A model generated the notes under the pieces. That model was given only the letters and a program-made list of their open reading frames with translations. It had not been told where the DNA came from and made no database searches. Below, piece after piece: positions 35,121 to 50,500 of a DNA stretch of 64,000 nucleotides. The translations under genes and the position numbers were made by a program. How positions within the stretch are numbered: position 1 is the stretch's first letter; each line of letters starts with the position of its first letter. This stretch comes from Klebsormidium nitens. Taxonomy: Eukaryota > Plantae > Klebsormidiophyceae. Where the stretch lies: NCBI GenBank assembly GCA_000708835.1, contig DF236961.1:1-64000 (forward strand), given 5' to 3'.

Positions 35121-38100
35121 TTACAAGACCTTCTGAAGGGCGCTCACATCCAGGGCTTCAAACTTGTTAACAACTTTCGAAACCGCGGCAGCCAACTTCT
35201 TCGCATCCTCCTTGCTGGGTGCCTGCACAAAAAGGTGAAAGGCAAATTGCGAAGTCTACACCATACTAGCAAAGAGAACGGTGAATATAAGCAGCGAGTA
35301 ACGGGTCTCCCTGTCAAGCGGACCGACATTCAATTGTATCTCCGACGAGCACCCACCTCGATGTTGAGTGGAAGAACGGGATCGTGCAGGGACAGCCGGA
35401 GCAAGAACCAGCCTCCATGGCCGGAAACTCGGATCTGCAATCACAGGGGGCGTGGGCATCAGATGCCTCCAATCGAAGCACATTACCAAGCTCCGAGCGG
35501 CCTGACTCGGGTTTACAAGCGCTGCTCCTGTATTAAGCAAGAAGTCACACAGATCCTCTGGTTCCTGCTCCACCAGGAAACGACCTGCAACGGGAGCGTA
35601 CGAAAACATAGTTTATGCAATCTCAGCATCGATACAAGGAGGACATCATCTTCAGAGAGACATTCCTTCTTTCTGCGAGTGAGAGCAATTTGAAGTCTGT
35701 TTCGGTCGGCTCACCCCTTCGTGGTTGACGGGCGCTATTTGCAGCGCGTCGTCCTCCTTCACCGACTGCTCCAACGCCGCCAAGACCTTGTTGCCGTACG
35801 CTTTGAAGTCCCTGCAACAAGGCGCAAAAATAAACGTTTCGTCAACAAGGAAACACAACGCGGTTTTGCGACGATGCGGAAGGCTTTCCGAGGAAGCGGG
35901 TGGAGAAGAGCTCAGCCCGGCAATGCTTCAGAAAGCTTTCGAGAAGCGGCGTCTCTAGGCTGACTTGTCTCAAAGTAACCAGAGCTGTCCACACAAAAAG
36001 CTTCAGAGTCGGTCAGAGAGTATCAATAGTAGGTTCATCCTCTATACTCCTCATTCCGGCCAGCTCGAAAGATCCATTCAGTCAAGTATGCCTCACGATA
36101 GATGAACGAACATGCGTGTACGCACCCTTGCACGTCGGGGTGTGCCTGGTCGATTTTGAACCGCAGCTCCGTAGCCACCTCCGCCTCTTGCAACTCTTCA
36201 ATCAGTTTCGTCAGCACCCCGCTGCCCTTGCCCTCGCCCGCGGTCGCGGCAGCCGCCATTTTGATGAGCAGCTTGACCATAGCGTATGCGCCGTCGTCCA
36301 GCCAGTTGTTCTCTTTGAGCGCGCCGTGACCGCTCGTTTCAATGGCCAGGTGCGTCTCCTGCCCGACCGAGTTGAGCCGGATGCCCTCGTCGATCACGTT
36401 CTTGTACCCGCGCTTGAACCGGTGGTGCTTCCCGCCTGTGACAGAAGCACCGCTGACGGTTATTAGGAGCTTAGGCATACCTTGTGTCTTGTTGGTTGGA
36501 GCAGTCGTGTGTTCTTCAGAGTGCTTTCAGGCAGCGGTTCCCTTGAGTGAGCCCCATGACAGACCGGCTGTCCAAGGACAGGTTCATAGCGGCTGGGAAT
36601 TTTCCCACTCCTCCTCTCAGATTCCGGCTGCTGCTGTATGCAGCGCGACGTGTCAACACAACAGTGTATCCTTATCATCAGAGAGTCTGGGGGAGTTCCT
36701 GCAAACCAGCCAATGGCCAGCGTCCTTGTTCACCCAGGCAACTGATCGGTCTTGCCACCTGGGCTAAGAAGAGCGGCAGAGAATGATCACTATCACAAGA
36801 GTCGCCAAGGGGGTCAACCATCTTTCTCTACCTGGTAAGCGTACAAGGAGTCACATATTTAAGCAGAACTTGGACCGGCGGCCGTACCCAGCTTTTCAAT
36901 GAACTCCGTGAGGCCGTCGGAGGTGACGCTGTCGGTGACGACAGTAGTCCCCGGGTGTTCTTCCAAGATAATGGCCGACAGCAGCGCAATCAGCCGGTTG
37001 CGGTTGATCTCCTTGCCGCCAGAATCCACCGCAGCAGACCTGCAAGCTCCACGAAAACCCTCTGTCGCATCGTCCTCCCTAGAAAAGGCGATCCGAGGAG
37101 ATACTTGCACACCGGACAGACCCCAAAAAGAGGTCGATACTCGACCCTCGAGCGCTCAGTAAGAACTGATTCCATCCAACCGGAGAACCTTACATCAAGG
37201 GCGCTCATCACTCTAGTTGACTCGCAGCCCCACAGAGCCTCCGACACAAATAAACTCCTCGGAAAGCAAGCGTAATGATGACGTCCTTCCGCTATGAGGC
37301 TGCCGCCTGCAACCGTCAGTGCTCTTGCGTGACAGCGACCTGAGGCACCTGGAAACTTCCCACCCCAACACGGAAGGGCAAAACAAGCTTTTTTAACTTT
37401 TCTGGAACACCGGAGTGTGCCCCACCTATCGACGTCGGTGTCGAAGATGATTCCAAAGTCCGCCTTGTTGTCCAGCACCGCCTTTTGAATTGCCGCCATG
37501 GCCGTCTCATCTTCGGGGTTCGGGATATGGTTAGGGAAAGTGCCTGCAGCGCAGCGGACCCCGTCAGAACGTGGTGAGGAGCAGCTCCCAGGATATTAGA
37601 CAGCTTACTCTTATGTCTCACTGGTATGTGATTTGCACTAGCTGTGTGCAAGCTGCCTGGGAGGCTTAATCATCGGAGCAAGGTCTAGGGGCAACTTCAC
37701 ACGTCACTTTCTTACCAAGTTCGTATACAGTGCAGTCTAAAGATACCTGTAGAACGTTCGACAACTTGATAATGAAACCCTTCCGTCGAGAACACTCACT
37801 GAGTCTACCGTCAAGCACAAGTGGACAGACGAAGTTCCAGAACTGGGCACCCTATTGAAAGCTGTTGTGGCAGCCAAGCGGACAAAAGCAAGAGCGAATC
37901 GACTCACCGTCAGGATCCAGGAACTGGCTGCCGTCCGTCCGAGCGCCCAGGGGCTCCAACACTTGGGGCTGCACCGACAAATGTACCCAAGTCAGCGACA
38001 GCAGCCGCGCGGGTAGGTCTCAGCAAAAGAGAGTTAACCTGCAACCTACTGGTGACTGCCGAAGCCCCATAGTGACGACGGGCGGTCTTCTAGCAAAGAG

Positions 38101-41475: not shown

Positions 41476-42208
41476 CAGCTGCCGCTTCTGCGCTTATCCC
41501 ACTGCTGAACGGACGGATCAGCAAGCTTCGGAGAAGCCTGTTGATGACCGCCAAAGCTTCCAAAGCTTCCCAACTGACCTTCAATCGAGCTTCAATTGGG
41601 TCAGCCGCCACAAAGATCGAGCAGCTTGCACAAATGCTGGCACAATGGTTGTCCTTCCCAGGCTCCTCCAAAGTCCACGGGCCACTTTGTCCATGCAAGA
41701 TCAGGGGGATCGCATGGCATGGCGCTTCAAACAAGGGAAGAGCCATGTCCGAGACCTGCATACGTCAGCTCCATGGATTATCTGCTTCTGCTGACGTAAC
41801 GGCAGGTACAGTCGCGGCCGCCGGCCCCCGCCCCAGCTCGATGAAATGGCTCGATACATTTAATAATGGCTCAACCTTTACCGTCTTCCTTGCTTTAGAA
41901 TTCAAAATGTAGAAACCGGCGTTCTCTTTTGCTCGTCCGTTGGATTACACAAAGAGACGGCTGAGATACGAAGTCGACAAGGCTGTTGCACGAGCCAAAC
42001 CTTCATCTGATTGGGTGCATGCAGAACAAAACGAGATCCAAGATTCTACCTAGGATCAGGATTCAGGAAGGGCGCGTCTCCTCAGGCTCAGGCTTGCCAT
42101 TGGCATTGGTGTACCTAGTTGGTGCAAAGACGCGCGATTTGTCAGCTCTTCGCGCTGCATTTTGCCGCTAGGGCGCCCAGAATTCTAGTGAACCTTCAGC
42201 AGCTGAAC

Positions 42209-45200
42209 ATGGCCTCTTGTCAAGCACCAGTGTTGGCCAATGGCCTGTCCGCAAGCGTGTCTCCAGCTGTGCTTGGAGATGCAAGCACGCAGCTCCGAAA
42301 GGCAGCATGCCGCAGGCCTGCTTTTGGCAGTGCAAGGGTGACACAACCCAAGGCGAGAATGCATGCATCCAATTCTGAGCATGAGGCAATCAGTAAGAAA
42401 CAGGTGAGAATCAATGAGGGCTGTGTCGTTCGAAAGCTGCTCTCCTTGATCGCTGACAACTGTAGCCAATTTGGGACCTGAATGATGGGCAACCAAACAA
42501 GTCAGACATTGAACGTTTCTTTTAGTGGGAAGCTTCAGATACGAGCTGTCTGATCAAATACTCGGGGTTATTTTGATTGTGTAAGAAGTACTGGAGCTCT
42601 AAAGCTTCAAGTGCACATTGATGACCTCAGCTTCTGAAATTTTGAGATTTTCAATTGTGCACACAAGCCACGTCATTCTGGAGACGATTTGAGGAGATTG
42701 GACGTCTATCTGACAATCTGTTTGTCCCTTGCATGTAATGCTCTTCTTTGGAAATGCACACAATTAAGATAAACCTCAATGATGGTCTTGTCGAACCCAT
42801 TGCTTTTTGTTGTACAAGTTGAGCTCAACTGTGCATGTCTTGCTGATCAGAACTTCAAGGTTGATTTGCCATGGTGAACTCTGGGGTGCATCAGTATAGA
42901 TGCGGTGTCTTAAAAAAGAAGGGAGGTCACAGATGATGCAACCCAAATTTTGGAACCATCCTGGGGAGGCCTTCACACAGGGGTAGTTTTGGGTTTGAAA
43001 GGCCTTTGAATCAGTTTAGCCTCCCTTTTCTCTCTTCATCTGCACCCTGTAAAATTGTCACCTGCTCCCAACATAAGACATGGTTGGTCACTTCTCATTG
43101 CTTTGTTGATTGCAATAGAGACCATAATCCTTGTTGATGCTAGGCTCCTACATTTTAGGAGCCTAGCATCCTTGTTGGTTATCAACCTTTTGATGATGCA
43201 ATTAGGGGTGCCGCAGTGACTATGATGGCTCCATTGTCGATACAGGCGTCCAAGGCAGGACTACCACGTTTTGTGCATAGGAGTCTGGCGGCAGCCGCAC
43301 TGGCTGGCCTGCTTGCCTCCGGACAGGGGGGCATTGCGCTCGCAGGTAAGCTGGCGCCCTGAGAAGTAGATGTGCACCTGGCTGCAAGTGCAGTTTCGTC
43401 TTGAAATTCTGCTAGCAGTATGCCGTCTTTGTAAGAAGGTTGCATAAGACGAGCTTGATAACGAGGTGTCTCAGCTCCAAATGTTAGCTGAGGATATATT
43501 GGGAGTCGCTTGATTGTCTAGGATTCCCTAGTCTGCGAAACTGAATTCCCTCGCTGATGTTGCTCTTACTTTAAGCCTTTCGTGCAGAGACCTACGACTT
43601 CAACACCTCTGATGAGCAGAGCCTGACCCAGAGCGTGCGGCCAGAGGGGAGCGGGAAGGCCAACACCCGCGACAATGGCCTTCTCCGGGAAGGGCCAAAC
43701 TCTCCTGAAGGAGCCAACACAGGCAAAAACAGTACTTTCAACTTCAACACCTCGGATGAGCAGACACTTGCCCAAAACTCCCAGGGGGAGGGGAGCGGCA
43801 AGGCAAACACCCGCCAACCTGGTGCTGGAAGAGAAGGTACTCTTCTTCTCAGAGGCAACTCACTTTGCGTGGGCCAATCGGATGCTGATGGGTCAAATTG
43901 GGTCAAATTGGGTCAAATCGGGTCAAATTGGGTCAAATTGGTACAAATGGGTTGATTGTATGCGTGGTCAAATTTGGCTTGATCAGCCATTTTTGAGATA
44001 GACCCAGCTTGGCACACAGTCATTAAGCTTATCCCCGTGATATCAAAATGGCTCGGACAGCTAGCCTCTCTAAGATAGTTGACCCTACAGTTACGCTTTC
44101 CAACACATTGAGCAATCTTGTTTCAAACGTGAGGCCAATGCAGCTTCCATGGAACAACTGCAAGCCTTAAATTCGTGAGACACGAACAATTGTGCACAAA
44201 GGCAATCCATGTATTGCTTTCTGTAGGTCCGACTGAGGGCGTCAAGCGAGCGTCATCCTCTCAGGCCCCAGCCAAGGACGATTTCCCTGGTCGCGCCGGG
44301 CGTGTTCTAAGCAAGGCTAAAGAAACTGCGGAGGACTTGTTGCCGGGCCAGCCTGGAAAAGCGCTCGAGGAGAAGACCCGAGGCCTGAGGCTCGGGAAGG
44401 CGCTGTCTGATGCTGGCCTGAACCTGAACACCACCGTTGCTGGTGGGTGCTGTTTCCATGTCTGTTTCCAACTGATTCCATGTCGTTAACATGACGGATT
44501 CATGAATAAAACTCTTTGCTTTGTGGCGGATTCATGAGATAAATTGGTTTTTCAACAAGGAGAACGTGGTCATCGCGAGCCCATTTGAAAATGATAAGCT
44601 GGTGGTCATCTGGACGACTTGCTGTCTATCCGTTCTCAAGGCTCCTATTCAAAAACCTTTCGAAAAAGCTCCCTGTCAAACTTCGGAATCTATTGAGCAA
44701 GTTCAATTTTCTGTTTGCGCCCAGCTGCTTTCGACTTCAACACCAGCGACGAGCAGACCCTGACTCAGAACCGGCAGCAAGAGGGGAGCGGCAAGGCCAA
44801 CACCAGGGACTCAGAGGCTAACCGAGAAGGTACGCTTGCCCCTCTCTTTCTATTTTTCCAGAACGTGTAGCAGTCGGAGCGAGACTGATACTTTCAGGCC
44901 GATCGTGTTCTGCCGAGCTGACGTACTCGTCCGGGAAGGACTGCATGACGAACGAGAGGGAATTTCCACGTTTGTCGAACACGCGAGGACCAATATCCGC
45001 TCGAAGGATGTCGGATGTCCGGACAAGCAGCTAAGAAGAAGTTATCGCCACCTACCCCTTCTTCAGCCGTACCTGCCACTTGATATGAAATCGACCTTTG
45101 TGGATCGAGAGAAGGATAAGTTACCGCACTTTACGAAGATTTGGAACCTATCCCATCGCCCCTCACTATCTGCCGCAGGCCCCACGTCCGGCGTCAAGCG

Positions 45201-46162
45201 CGCATCGTCCTCCCAGGCGCCCGAGGAGGATTTCCCCGGCCGTGCCGGGCGCGCCCTGGCCCGGGCGAAGGACAATGTGGAAAACCTGGTGCCGGGGCAA
45301 CCGGGGAAGGCGCTCGAGAACGCCGCCCGGGGAGTGCGCCTGGGGAAGGCGCAGTCGGATGCTGGAGTCAACCCAGTGACCACCATCTCAGGTGCGGGCT
45401 TTGCTCCTTTGTTTGTGCACGTTGTAATGAAAGCATTTGTTGAATGCAGAGAAGAAAGACAACGCGGTCTACGCAACTCGTACTCGTTCGTTGGTTTGTT
45501 GAATGCAGAGAAGGAAGACAATGCGCTCTATGCAACTCGTACTCGTTCGTTGGATTCTGTGCCGCTTATAACGCGTTACAACGGCTTTGCTCACAAGTGA
45601 AGAGCTAATGTGAGCTGAGCACAAGCAGGGGGCTGACAAAGGACCTGCCCGCAGATCTTAGGTCTGAAACAGCCTTTCTTGCCATTGATGCTCTCGTGCA
45701 AAGGCTCAAATATCATACACACTATAAAGCTCGATTGCCTTGTCTAATACATTAGGTCTCTCGTTCGCAAATGGAGGTCACAAATCCATATCAACGAAAG
45801 ACGTTTGCGATTGAAGGACTCCATGCCAAGCGTCACAGCGACCGCGAAGTAATTCAACTGTATTTTCAACTTTTCTGTCCCCGTCGTTTGCAGAAGCCCT
45901 GGTTGATCCCCGTGAGGGTCTGGCTGTCGCCCGCGACAGCGTGCAGAGCACCCGGACGGAGGCTCGGCGGGTGAGCAAGGAGGGGCGCGAGGCCATCATG
46001 CAAGAGAATGCGCAAAAGCAGAGTGGGGAAGACAGTGGGCCGGCCAAGACCCTGAAAGAATTGGTGGCACAAAAGCAAAAGCTGGTGGGCAAAGTGGACC
46101 CTCTGCAGGACGGCATCGACTCGGCTGCACCGGGGCAAGCCCGGGGCAAGTCGTTCTACTAA
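42209..46162 (+). CDS. Orphan ~448-aa hydrophilic repeat protein with an apparent bipartite (stroma + thylakoid lumen) presequence
   Basis: Exons 42209-42403, 43246-43345, 43588-43836, 44227-44442, 44725-44829, 45179-45391, 45894-46162 splice in phase at GT-AG sites into one ORF. Three copies of repeat A (FNTSDEQ-L-Q…EGSGKANTR) and two of repeat B (GPT-GVKRASSSQAP…DFPGRAG…PGQPGKALE…G-RLGKA-SDAG). Confidence 0.8.
43891..43940. repeat. Intronic tandem repeat, 10-bp unit ggtcaaattg x5
   Basis: Five consecutive copies, one with a single substitution. Confidence 0.95.
45436..45553. repeat. Intronic 59-bp tandem duplication
   Basis: tttgttgaatgcagagaag…gcaactcgtactcgttcgttgg starts at 45436 and 45495, with few substitutions. 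Confidence 0.9.
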
Positions 46163-47528
46163 ATGAAAGAACGAGCGCGTGTTGTTTAGCGGCAGTGCTT
46201 GATGTGAGTATCCATGTCAATTAGTGAGGAAAAGTGCTGTTGTCAACGAACGGAAGGTATGCAAGTCGGTATACGAGTTGGTGATCAGTTGCTCGAGTCT
46301 AACCTGTGTTGGAAGTACTTTGGTCACTGGGATACGTACTTGTATACTGTCTCTGTCCGAACAGTGTACGCAGACTTTTTGGAAGCGGAGAGGTTAACTT
46401 TTGAACCTTTTTGCCCGCATTGAGTGCGGCTTCCCGACCAATTCCGATACTGCGTGCATGCCATACGGGTCTACTTATTGCATCACGATATTTGCCCCAA
46501 GCAACGGTTTTACAACACGCCTGCATATGATGATGCAATGTGCGCTCAACTATTACAAAAAAACGTGAACGCGACACGATTGCGAAATGCTGCAGTGGCA
46601 CACGTTCTCACCCGGCGTGCATCAAGTGTCTACGACGGTTACGATTGGGCGTTGCCTTCTTCCAACCCTTGATATAGGACCTCGGAAGTTGGTTCAATAT
46701 TGAACCAATTTGTGTCATGTGAGTCGATCGTCAGCGCAAGGACGTACAGCTATTTGATTCGCAAATACTTGTGACGGCCAGCCGGTTATGAAGGCTTTTT
46801 CAGTCTGTGCTAAGTACGTTCAGGCTATAAGGAATTAAGTTTAACTTCAATTCAAACTTAACTTCAAATCAAACTTGCCGCTAAAAGCAGCATAGTAGTG
46901 ATCGTCGGCCGCCATGGCGCACAAACAGTATAAGCTAGCTGCCAAAGTGTCTCGGCCGGGATGAGTCAATGATGGATTCAATCCGTTGCCGCCCAGTCAA
47001 GTTTGAAGACTCTACTTGACTCAATGAAGCTAGAGGGCATTTAGCGACCAGTGAGCACTAGGAACATGATGGTGTTTGCTCGCCGAGCTAGTACCACGTG
47101 GGATTCGGCGATGTCGCGTTATGTCAGTAATGACATTACTGCAGATGCATCCGACAAGGCCCTCTTTAAGCATGTAGCAGTGGTCTCGGACAGTGGCCAA
47201 TTGCCATGAAGGCCACCGCTGAATGCTTTGCATGGACGACAGCAAAATCCTTACAGATCAGTAGGGCAATACCCTCGTATCTTGGAGGGCATGCAGAACT
47301 TACAAAAACAGACAGATGTGTTCCTGAATCATGGCCGTGATCGACCAATATCGAGTTGTTGAGTCCAATGCAATGTTCTTTCTGAACTGACCTTCAGGCT
47401 TGTAATGGCTGTAGAGCGAATCCACCTCAAGAGCTTCTTGCCACTAGAATGCCCGTTGCACCTAGAGTTATCTTCAACCCGTCTCCTAATGAACAAATGG
47501 TACACCTCGACTGTGAGCGCGTTTGGAC

Positions 47529-50500
47529 CTAAACGGTCGCTAGATCTTTCGCTGGGCTGCTCGCCAAGCTTTGCTGCAGCTGTTCCCGCAGGGCTGCCAG
47601 GTCTGCACCCGACTCTAGGATCTTGGCAGCGGCTTGACGCCCGGACAAGGTGGCGCCCTCCATGCTGTCAATGTAGTCCTGAAAAACGGGGAGAACGCAT
47701 CCATGAGTCAAAGCTTATGAGTAATCAAGGCTAACGTAAGCCACTGATAACGATTGATGCAAAAAAGAGGCTTCCGCGTGAAGGTCGTGCGAAATTTGCC
47801 CAGCTGCCACGGCTCGTCTTGCTTGAGACGACAAACTTACAAAAAGAGATTAAGGTCCATTTTTCAAATTGTGATGGGCTGAAGCAGCTAAAACCGAGGG
47901 CCGCCAACAGAAATGCTAAGCATGCCCTCAGCAAGTAATACCCATGCTTCGAGAGTGAAGGCAGCAATCGACGTACCTGTTTGGTGTAGCTGCCCGCTAG
48001 GAAAAAGTTGTCGATGGGCGTGCGCTGGTCGGGGCGGAAGACGTCCATCCCGGGGGCCTCCCGGTACAGCGACTGCCCAATCTTCACCACCGAGTGCCAC
48101 GTCATCGACAGGTTCCGAGCGGACGGGAACAGGTTGAACACCTGCACAAGCACGCACGCCGCTCAAAATGTGGCCACTCTTGGCGTGGCGAATTCCGGCG
48201 CAACTATAGCGAAGGCCCCCCTAGTAAGCTGCTTCAAGGCAAATCTGACTTTTGCGACCATTGCAGTCATCGACCAGAAAAATGGTGACAGAATGCATTT
48301 CAAGTGGGATGGTCACTGCATACATCAAGCAAGAGTCCTCGTGCCCCATGAAGATGCGAAAATCAGCTATGATTCGATTGTAAGGGGTCCGACTCCTCCA
48401 TACACCACGCGAGACTGACGCGGCCGGGCCTCTCACCTGCTCGTTCACCTTCGCAACAATCTCCTCATTGGGCAGAGCCATGTAAGGGTCCGCGGGAGTC
48501 AACACGCACCTGGACAGCAACAATCAACAGTTGACAACACCGCTCCTCACAATTGCCAGACATTGAACCCCCTCGCTTGACCGGTTCCTAGTCTGCAGCG
48601 AATTCCAAATCGGTCTGCTGCGTGAATTGGGCAATGAAACCCGGACAACCAATCCGTCGAGCTTCGATCCGAAAACACCTCAAACTTCTAGCTTCGCTCT
48701 GCTTAGCAGGAACCGCAGCGCCCTTAAAATACGATATGCACAAAGATGCAGCAAGCAGCAGAGGCAGAAGTGAACCGCTCACTGGAGCAGGGATCCCTCC
48801 CCGGGCTTGTAGTAGTCCTGGGGGCTGGTCAGAGCCAGGTCCGCAAAGCACGAAAAGTCGGCGTCCGCACTGTACAGTAAGTTGTCCAACCCCTCGGCAC
48901 GCGCCAGCTGGCTGCACCGCCCACAACGAGAACAAGGTCAGGCCAGGGCACACAGATTTCCAGAGAAAGGGTTTTCAGAGGAAGAGTTCTCAAATCCAGA
49001 ATCAGATTTTCAAATGCTGGCGTGCACCTCGGTTCACACTACCTTGCTCTACGCCAAACGCAGTCAGTACGCACGTAATCCTGTCTTGACACAACCGTCT
49101 TGTCATCTGCCAAGCCAGGCAGATGTGTCAAAACAAATGGTCCAAAGTGCGGCGTCGCCCTCATAAAAAGAAACCCCAAGACGTCGCCCTCAAAATCTAG
49201 GGCCCTCCTTTGCGGTTGGCAGAGAGCATTAGATGCAGACCCCATCAGACAATCCACAGGGTGGAAGTTGGGGGCTGCCCCCATCAATCGATGGTTCCGC
49301 CTTTTGTTGCAGGGCCCATGGGCGTGCCTCCTGACTGAACGCGTCTTTCAAAATAGAGATTCAGTCATGCACTCAAAGTCGTCAAACCACAACGAGCAGA
49401 GTCTGAGATTGTGCTGCTCCACGTGGCGCCCTCTCACTTGATCTTGGCCTGGTCCTGCAGTTCCGTGACCCAGCCGTTGTACCGCAGCTGCACCGTAATG
49501 ACGGGCACTCCCTCCAAATGGTAGATGTTGTCGAACAGCGGCCACCGCCGCCACGCGGTCGGCAGCAGCCGCTTGATCCCGGGCACGTCGCACGCGGCAA
49601 CGTACGCGTCCGCTTTCACGATCTCCGACTGGTTAGCCTGGGGGGAGAAAAGGTTAAATATAAATGGTCAACCTAACATGATGCAGGAGCCCTGCAAGGA
49701 CCGATCATTGTTGTCCACTCCACCTGCCGTTGTACACAAGAGATCCTCGACATTGTCGTCAGCACATATGCAAAGTTTATCTTGAAAAGAAAAATCCTTC
49801 AAGAAGTGAGCACGACTTGAACTCGTTGCATTCAGCCCTTGGCAATGCCTTTGGCAGTCTCCTTGACTTAGCGTACTCCAGTTGAAAAGGAATAAACCGA
49901 CAAACTGATGACCCCGAAGATATAGGGCAGGTCTTAGCTCCGTTTGTCTCCCCACCTTGGTCATGTGCAGGCCCGTTACTCGCACACTGCCATCTGCCGC
50001 CTCTTCGTATTGCACCTCCCGGCAGCCCCACCGCACATGGAAGCGACCGCCCTTGTCCTCAATGTACTTGATTAGGGGGTCGTGAAGGCCAGTCTGAGGG
50101 GAACCTGGACCAAAAATCCGCTCAAGCATGAGTCACGCAGGCATTCATTGGGTCGTGAAAGACAAGCACGAAGGTTTCAGCCGATTGTCTAGGAAAGTCG
50201 CACAAACAGAGGCATGGGGATTGTGCTGGCAACTCGTATACGTTTATGTCTTCGGCTTTGGTATATTCGTCAACCAAGATTGTCAGGCTTTGGTACATTC
50301 GTCAACCAAGATTGTCACAATTTCTTTGAAGTCCTCTAGAGTCTTCGATTGGATTATCCAATCACAGGCGACGAAGGTCTCAACTACAGAAGCCCGTACA
50401 TCCAACATCCATCACTCGTTACACGTGTAAGGCAGCCCGTCAAGTGACAAACAACCTCAGGAGTGAAAACTCGGACTATGAAAAACCGAAGCAGCGAGAT

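Follow-up and report, generated by a model that had tools for sequence, protein, structure and literature searches.

The thylakoid lumen is a narrow compartment in which the catalogued proteins are folded enzymes, subunits of the oxygen-evolving complex (OEC) and immunophilins, and to our knowledge lumenal proteins are essentially all folded. Here we analyze a gene found in the first 64,000 nucleotides of contig DF236961.1 of the streptophyte alga Klebsormidium nitens (GenBank assembly GCA_000708835.1; this whole stretch is called the window below). The gene encodes a precursor of 448 amino acids (aa) that shares features with three described systems: Sec-dependent lumen precursors, proteins of the late embryogenesis abundant (LEA) type and the Rubisco linkers of pyrenoids. 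On balance we consider it somewhat probable that the product is a Sec-imported, lumenal and disordered repeat protein with a specific binding role.

Like PsbO and plastocyanin, which are lumen precursors dependent on the Sec route, the product is nuclear-encoded and starts with a putative bipartite presequence, in which a stromal transit peptide is followed by a basic n-region that precedes an Ala/Leu core and an A-x-A site, with no twin arginine. Its mature part sets it apart from them: instead of a folded redox or OEC subunit it comprises 350 aa of hydrophilic, repeat-built sequence, in which no homology to any lumenal protein was detected. With LEA proteins and hydrophilins, such as the stromal COR15A, it shares plastid targeting (predicted here), hydrophilicity, richness in Gly, the absence of Cys and Trp and predicted disorder, whereas its predicted compartment is the lumen and not the stroma, no LEA family of Pfam matches it, no significant amphipathic periodicity is present and the constraint on its motifs is unusually strong. 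Like EPYC1-type Rubisco linkers, it is a lineage-restricted orphan, built from repeats and predicted to be disordered, with short conserved sticker motifs between variable spacers; unlike EPYC1, it has a neutral isoelectric point (pI), only three copies of one repeat and two of another, unrelated one, and a putative thylakoid transfer signal, which points away from the stroma and the pyrenoid matrix.

Gene structure and transcription

Three-frame translation of positions 41800-46600 yielded seven exons on the plus strand at 42209-46162, which join into 1347 nt, corresponding to 448 codons and a TAA stop (Table 1). All exon borders are canonical (GT..AG), intron 1 is in phase 0 and introns 2-6 are in phase 1, and the start codon has the context gaacATGG.

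The transcript sample comprised 20 public runs from seven studies covering the locus; from four studies, contigs of one run each (X11, X13, X16 and X19) were aligned to positions 41700-46900. The run records do not state that RNA was sequenced and the kind of library was guessed; the contigs were identified as transcripts because all six introns are absent from them. In all four runs the spliced contigs carry exactly the six predicted joints with no mismatches and span approximately 42122-46408, reproducing the exact model of seven exons spliced in phase into about 448 aa that had been proposed in an initial annotation made from the sequence alone. The same annotation had named the non-use of exon 2 (43246-43345) as evidence against its reading; this exon is used in each of the four runs and is present in the spliced contigs of all of them. 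The gene is real, transcribed and spliced as predicted. Its transcripts were assembled in at least ten runs belonging to several of the seven studies, which weakly suggests that expression is broad and not limited to stress, the conditions of the runs being coded.

Parts of intron 1 (42399-43242) are covered by separate contigs of low depth in X11 and X13 (2-5, compared with 100-512 for the spliced contigs), which are most simply explained by unspliced pre-mRNA or carry-over of DNA.

Table 1. Exons and transcript ends of the repeat-protein gene (positions in the window).
Feature	Position	Strand	Support
5' untranslated region, furthest 5' reach of contigs	42122-42208	+	contigs start at 42122 (X11) and 42135 (X19); no ATG
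Exon 1, residues 1-65: Ala/Ser/Arg-rich peptide of stroma-targeting type and polar linker	42209-42403	+	joint 42403/43246 in four runs
Exon 2, residues 66-98 (+1 nt): signal of thylakoid-transfer type	43246-43345	+	translation, transcripts, conservation in L002
Exon 3: repeat A1, 14-aa linker, repeat A2	43588-43836	+	translation, transcripts, A alignment
Exon 4: repeat B1	44227-44442	+	translation, transcripts, B alignment
Exon 5: repeat A3	44725-44829	+	translation, transcripts, A alignment
Exon 6: repeat B2	45179-45391	+	translation, transcripts, B alignment
Exon 7: charged tail, stop TAA at 46160-46162	45894-46162	+	translation, transcripts, model, tail alignment
3' untranslated region, furthest 3' reach of contigs	46163-46408	+	contig ends at 46286-46408

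Homologs and taxonomic distribution

None of the seven exon translations had a usable family match in Pfam or NCBIfam. When the seven exon translations were compared with Pfam-A by hmmscan at E<=10, no match to LEA_1-6, dehydrin or SMP was found, and sub-threshold TCAD9 and AIP3 matches on the tail were the only ones returned. Sequence searches of PDB with the orthologue described below and with profiles of B and of the tail yielded chance-level matches only (E >= 0.058), and no match reached 0.9 in two feature searches of the ESM Atlas. The initial annotation had recognized neither repeat as a known family, and the searches bear this out, phmmer retrieving close kin only. Among papers on the lumen, LEA proteins, pyrenoid linkers and proteomes of Klebsormidium, none could be linked to the gene in the absence of a public gene identifier.

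Word-index searches with the frame of exon 6 (repeat B2), with the orthologue L002 and with profile A5 gave ten proteins only (P0001-P0010), all of them close kin or fragments of exon open reading frames (ORFs). The stop-free frame around exon 6, with the query limited to B2, retrieved a single protein, P0001 (238 aa, 87% identical), and profile A5 added only three further close fragments. The contig encoding P0001, L001, is a fragment of a spliced mRNA, open over bases 2-991 (330 aa) and colinear with exons 3-7. A scan of JGI metagenome contigs with a pattern derived from the B alignment identified L002, a full-length mRNA of 1,672 nt whose ORF (160-1518, 453 aa) is 68% identical overall to the window protein, with an equal presequence layout and an equal order of modules (A-A-B-A-B-tail). 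Aligned to L005, a segment of a genomic contig of 77.6 kb, the L002 mRNA falls into seven blocks, and therefore the seven-exon structure is conserved in a second species. Local synteny is conserved as well: downstream of the gene, on the opposite strand, an exon resembling flavin amine oxidase (PF01593, E 1.6e-5) occupies positions 47731-48153 (minus strand), and a flavin amine-oxidase neighbor is likewise found downstream, on the opposite strand, in L005 (9666-9926, minus strand).

When P0001 was compared exhaustively by phmmer with 1.84 billion cluster representatives, six matches were returned (78-123 aa, 65-88% identical), which are plainly exon ORFs with intron-derived flanks. Judged by these comparisons, the family is a lineage-restricted orphan, present in a handful of close taxa in the searched data.

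Two contigs of bacterial metagenome-assembled genomes (L003, 2001-2195, and L004, 2001-2129), obtained in a B-profile pattern scan of bacterial and archaeal genomes, were rejected as homologs: they have only the octapeptide DFPGRAGR in common with the family, in GC-rich, non-homologous frames rich in Arg, Ala and Gly. Such a scan can mislead via short patterns.

Repeats and predicted disorder of the mature protein

The mature part, residues 99-448, has 350 aa, a mass of 36.8 kDa, a pI of 6.86, a grand average of hydropathy (GRAVY) of -0.99 and 11.1% Gly, and contains no Cys, Trp or His. The initial annotation had described a hydrophilic mature part of about 350 aa free of Cys and Trp, to which the absence of His can be added, and had divided it into two repeat types in the order A-A-B-A-B followed by a charged tail, an order that the translation and the repeat alignments confirm. 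Repeat A has the motif F[DN]FNTSDEQ..L.Q....E.SGKANTR, and repeat B the motif PT.G.KR.S.SQ.P..DFPGRA.R...AK.....L.PGQPGKALE...RG.RLG.A.SDA. Over 34 aa, the copies of A share 64-73% identity; B1 and B2 share 70% over 71 aa and match each other in TBLASTN with E ~1e-25. The similarity within each repeat type is, by these alignments, far beyond chance. No relationship was detected by hhalign between A and B or between B and the tail (probability < 1%), and by profile comparison the modules A, B and tail are unrelated.

Disorder-promoting residues make up 66% of the mature part, and its mean hydropathy on the Uversky plot (H 0.39) lies below the boundary of 0.413, on the disordered side. AlphaFold2 modeling of the L002 mature part, based on a shallow family alignment, gave no confident fold (mean predicted local distance difference test score, pLDDT, 44.7; predicted template-modeling score, pTM, 0.15), the only moderately confident element being a helix of the tail (model residues 272-309, pLDDT 53-68). 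The isolated A-B unit was modeled with two helices within B (pLDDT 53.9, pTM 0.14). The alignments behind these models have 8-11 rows from 3-4 taxa, so that low pLDDT is weak evidence of disorder. The Uversky boundary and the low AlphaFold confidence (pLDDT 45-54) are nevertheless both consistent with the disorder that the initial annotation predicted, and the mature part is probably largely unfolded.

An EF-hand-like reading of D-x-N-x-S in repeat A was considered and rejected: position 6 is Asp and not Gly, position 12 is Gln and not Glu, and there is no EF-hand match in Pfam.

Presequence and predicted localization

The predicted cleavage point, ALA98/E99, coincides exactly with the exon 2/3 junction, and therefore the presequence would be encoded by exons 1-2 and the mature modules by exons 3-7. 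Residues 1-53 comprise 12 Ala, 6 Ser, 7 Arg+Lys and 1 Asp, with the first basic residue at position 30. Chloroplast transit peptides usually have such an Ala/Ser/Arg-rich composition with few acidic residues, and an uncharged start, a high content of Ser and Ala and a scarcity of acidic residues are all found here. The elements typical of a thylakoid transfer signal follow: a basic n-region (KAGLPRFVHRS), a hydrophobic core of about 12 residues (LAAAALAGLLA), the helix-breaking SGQGG, and IALA/E with Ala at -3 and -1. The initial annotation had described an N-terminal peptide, a polar linker and the string RFVHRS-LAAAALAGLLAS-GQGGIALA/E, and all three are present as described.

The bipartite layout is kept in the orthologue L002, where the counterpart of the signal reads GLPRSVERSLTAAALAGLL...AVA/ETY and AVA/E occupies the same place. 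Between the two proteins the precursor start MASCQA, the residues GLPR.V.RSL.AAALAGLL, a c-region containing Gly and Pro, the A-x-A site and the mature start ETY(D/N)FNT are all kept, and the stromal part of the presequence has diverged (ratio of the rates of non-synonymous and synonymous substitutions, dN/dS, 0.30). No twin arginine (RR or KR) was found before the core in the window protein (PRFVHRS) or in L002 (PRSVERS), both having single arginines only, and therefore the Sec route is expected, provided that the signal is a thylakoid transfer signal. Moreover, given what is established on the cpSec and cpTat pathways, the Sec route would suit an unfolded passenger. The A-x-A site and the lack of a twin arginine had been pointed out in the initial annotation, and both are conserved in L002. 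Targeting to the thylakoid lumen by the Sec route is plausible, and we lean towards it.

We therefore propose the following order of events. In a streptophyte alga of the Klebsormidium type, expression of this nuclear gene would give rise to the 448-aa precursor with its bipartite presequence; a transit peptide of roughly 50-65 aa would direct import into the chloroplast stroma; a Sec-type transfer signal of about 35 aa, with single arginines, an Ala/Leu core, a Gly/Pro-rich c-region and AxA, would take the protein on to the thylakoid; and thylakoid processing peptidase would cut after ALA98, so that a soluble protein with ETYDF at its start, 350 aa long and 36.8 kDa in mass, would be set free in the lumen.

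Some features weigh against this localization. The hydrophobic stretch has a mean Kyte-Doolittle value of ~1.6 over 19 residues (calculated by hand), which is borderline for a membrane helix, and it could be an uncleaved membrane anchor; furthermore, there are N-x-S/T sequons in the A motif and a conserved KR at the start of each B, and both features are also compatible with a protein of the secretory pathway. The precursor could thus be a signal-anchor protein of the thylakoid, the envelope or the endoplasmic reticulum and secretory system, with repeats that are exposed at a membrane or exported, carry N-glycans at the NTS/NTT sequons and are perhaps cleaved at the conserved KR. Five N-x-S/T sequons per species, of which three lie in the conserved A motif, and the conservation of G[VI]KR at the start of both B modules would agree with such a protein, but the core is preceded by about 77 residues of transit-peptide-like composition, it is short, and the helix-breaking G/P region and the AxA site that follow it are both conserved. 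In addition, repeat A2 of L002 (FNFDTSDEQ) has Asp in place of the sequon Asn, and therefore the motif is conserved and not the sequon. We consider a signal-anchor protein unlikely.

Bipartite presequences of similar arrangement also exist in the mitochondrial intermembrane space, where a matrix signal is followed by a sorting signal cut by the inner-membrane peptidase; the absence of basic residues from the first 29 positions is, however, atypical of matrix-targeting signals. Repeat-rich disordered Rubisco linkers occur in other algae, and a repeat linker of the stroma or the pyrenoid matrix might be imagined. The known linkers of the EPYC1 type are basic and stromal and have many near-identical repeats with a motif that binds Rubisco, whereas the protein described here combines a mature pI of 6.9 with a putative cleavable transfer signal, and its repeats number only three (A) and two (B) copies at ~70% identity. 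Residence in the mitochondrial intermembrane space or in the stroma or pyrenoid matrix is, even taking the two together, very improbable.

Selection and the proposed role of the repeats

To characterize the pattern of selection, dN/dS was calculated for the mature part, and the ratio is 0.08 in comparison with L001 (dS 0.56) and 0.13 in comparison with L002 (dS ~1.25, near saturation), with similar values across every module. B has 39 invariant columns, A has 18 and the tail has 52. Invariant or nearly so within and between species are the A motifs F[DN]F[ND]T[ST]DEQ and SGKANTR; the B motifs KR.S.SQ, DFPGRA, PGQPGKALE and RG.RLG.A.SDA; and the last 27 residues of the protein, KLVGKVD..QDG.DSAAPGQARGKSFY.

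Across all three species B1 clusters with B1 and B2 with B2, and therefore B was duplicated before the species separated, and its copies have escaped homogenization. The short A copies sort less cleanly, A2 of the window protein being about equally close to A3 and A2 of L002. Phase-1 exons were probably duplicated ahead of the divergence of the sampled species, giving rise to the A-A-B-A-B-tail architecture.

The initial annotation had interpreted the mature protein as a disordered, LEA-like protectant of the lumen against desiccation, cold or high light. A LEA-like or hydrophilin-type protein of this kind would accumulate under such stress and shield membranes and proteins non-specifically. 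Hydrophilins are characterized by Gly above 6% and by GRAVY below -1 or mean hydrophilicity above 1 (PMC4190154). The Gly content of residues 99-448 (11.1%) is well within this range, and their GRAVY (-0.99) lies at the border, a narrow miss. The bulk composition (hydrophilic, Gly-rich and predicted to be disordered) is thus LEA-like, and here the likeness ends, given the Pfam-A result for LEA_1-6, dehydrin and SMP reported above. Nor was there an amphipathic-helix signal above shuffled controls in the mature part, the best 18-residue hydrophobic moment (0.63) being below the 95th percentile of the shuffles (0.68). No 11-mer periodicity was seen by eye, and the program TRF, run on DNA only, found nothing in the exons. 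The very strong constraint at the level of motifs and, as a weaker argument, the broad expression suggested by the transcripts also speak against a protectant of this kind. It is one possibility, suggested by composition, and not the best supported; we regard it as rather doubtful.

Strong purifying selection together with invariant short motifs would fit specific binding better than non-specific shielding. We favor a multivalent binder or scaffold because short invariant peptides recur two to three times among variable, probably unfolded spacers, which is the pattern expected of multivalent binding motifs. The mature protein may accordingly serve as such a binder or scaffold, or as a chaperone-like holder, for specific partners in the lumen or at the membrane surface, and not as a non-specific filler that replaces water.

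Introns and flanking sequences

Two introns of the gene contain short tandem repeats: a 10-bp array in intron 3 (TGGGTCAAAT x 6.5, 87% matches, 43889-43952) and a tandem duplicate of a 59-bp unit in intron 6 (two copies, 93% matches, 45436-45553). Upstream of the gene, positions 36990-37499 (minus strand) weakly match domain II of phosphoglucomutase/phosphomannomutase (E 0.0011; 20 bits, which is below the cut-off of 29.3), and this match may be an exon of an upstream gene.

Implications

If the predicted localization were false, the locus would be one further expressed orphan gene. If it is true, the lumen of these algae would harbor a disordered repeat protein of 37 kDa, a strongly constrained, lineage-specific candidate for a factor in the life of an early-diverging streptophyte alga out of water. 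In that case the conserved peptides FDFNTSDEQ, SGKANTR, DFPGRA, PGQPGKALE and the C-terminal GKSFY could serve directly as baits. More speculatively, and with considerable doubt, we suggest that Klebsormidium and its close kin evolved a dedicated, disordered lumen protein with multivalent motifs, whose conserved A, B and C-terminal motifs would serve to tether or hold particular partners in the lumen. Such tethering could act, for example, during the shrinkage of the lumen and the swings of pH and ionic conditions that accompany dehydration, and would then be a lineage-specific contribution to aeroterrestrial life.

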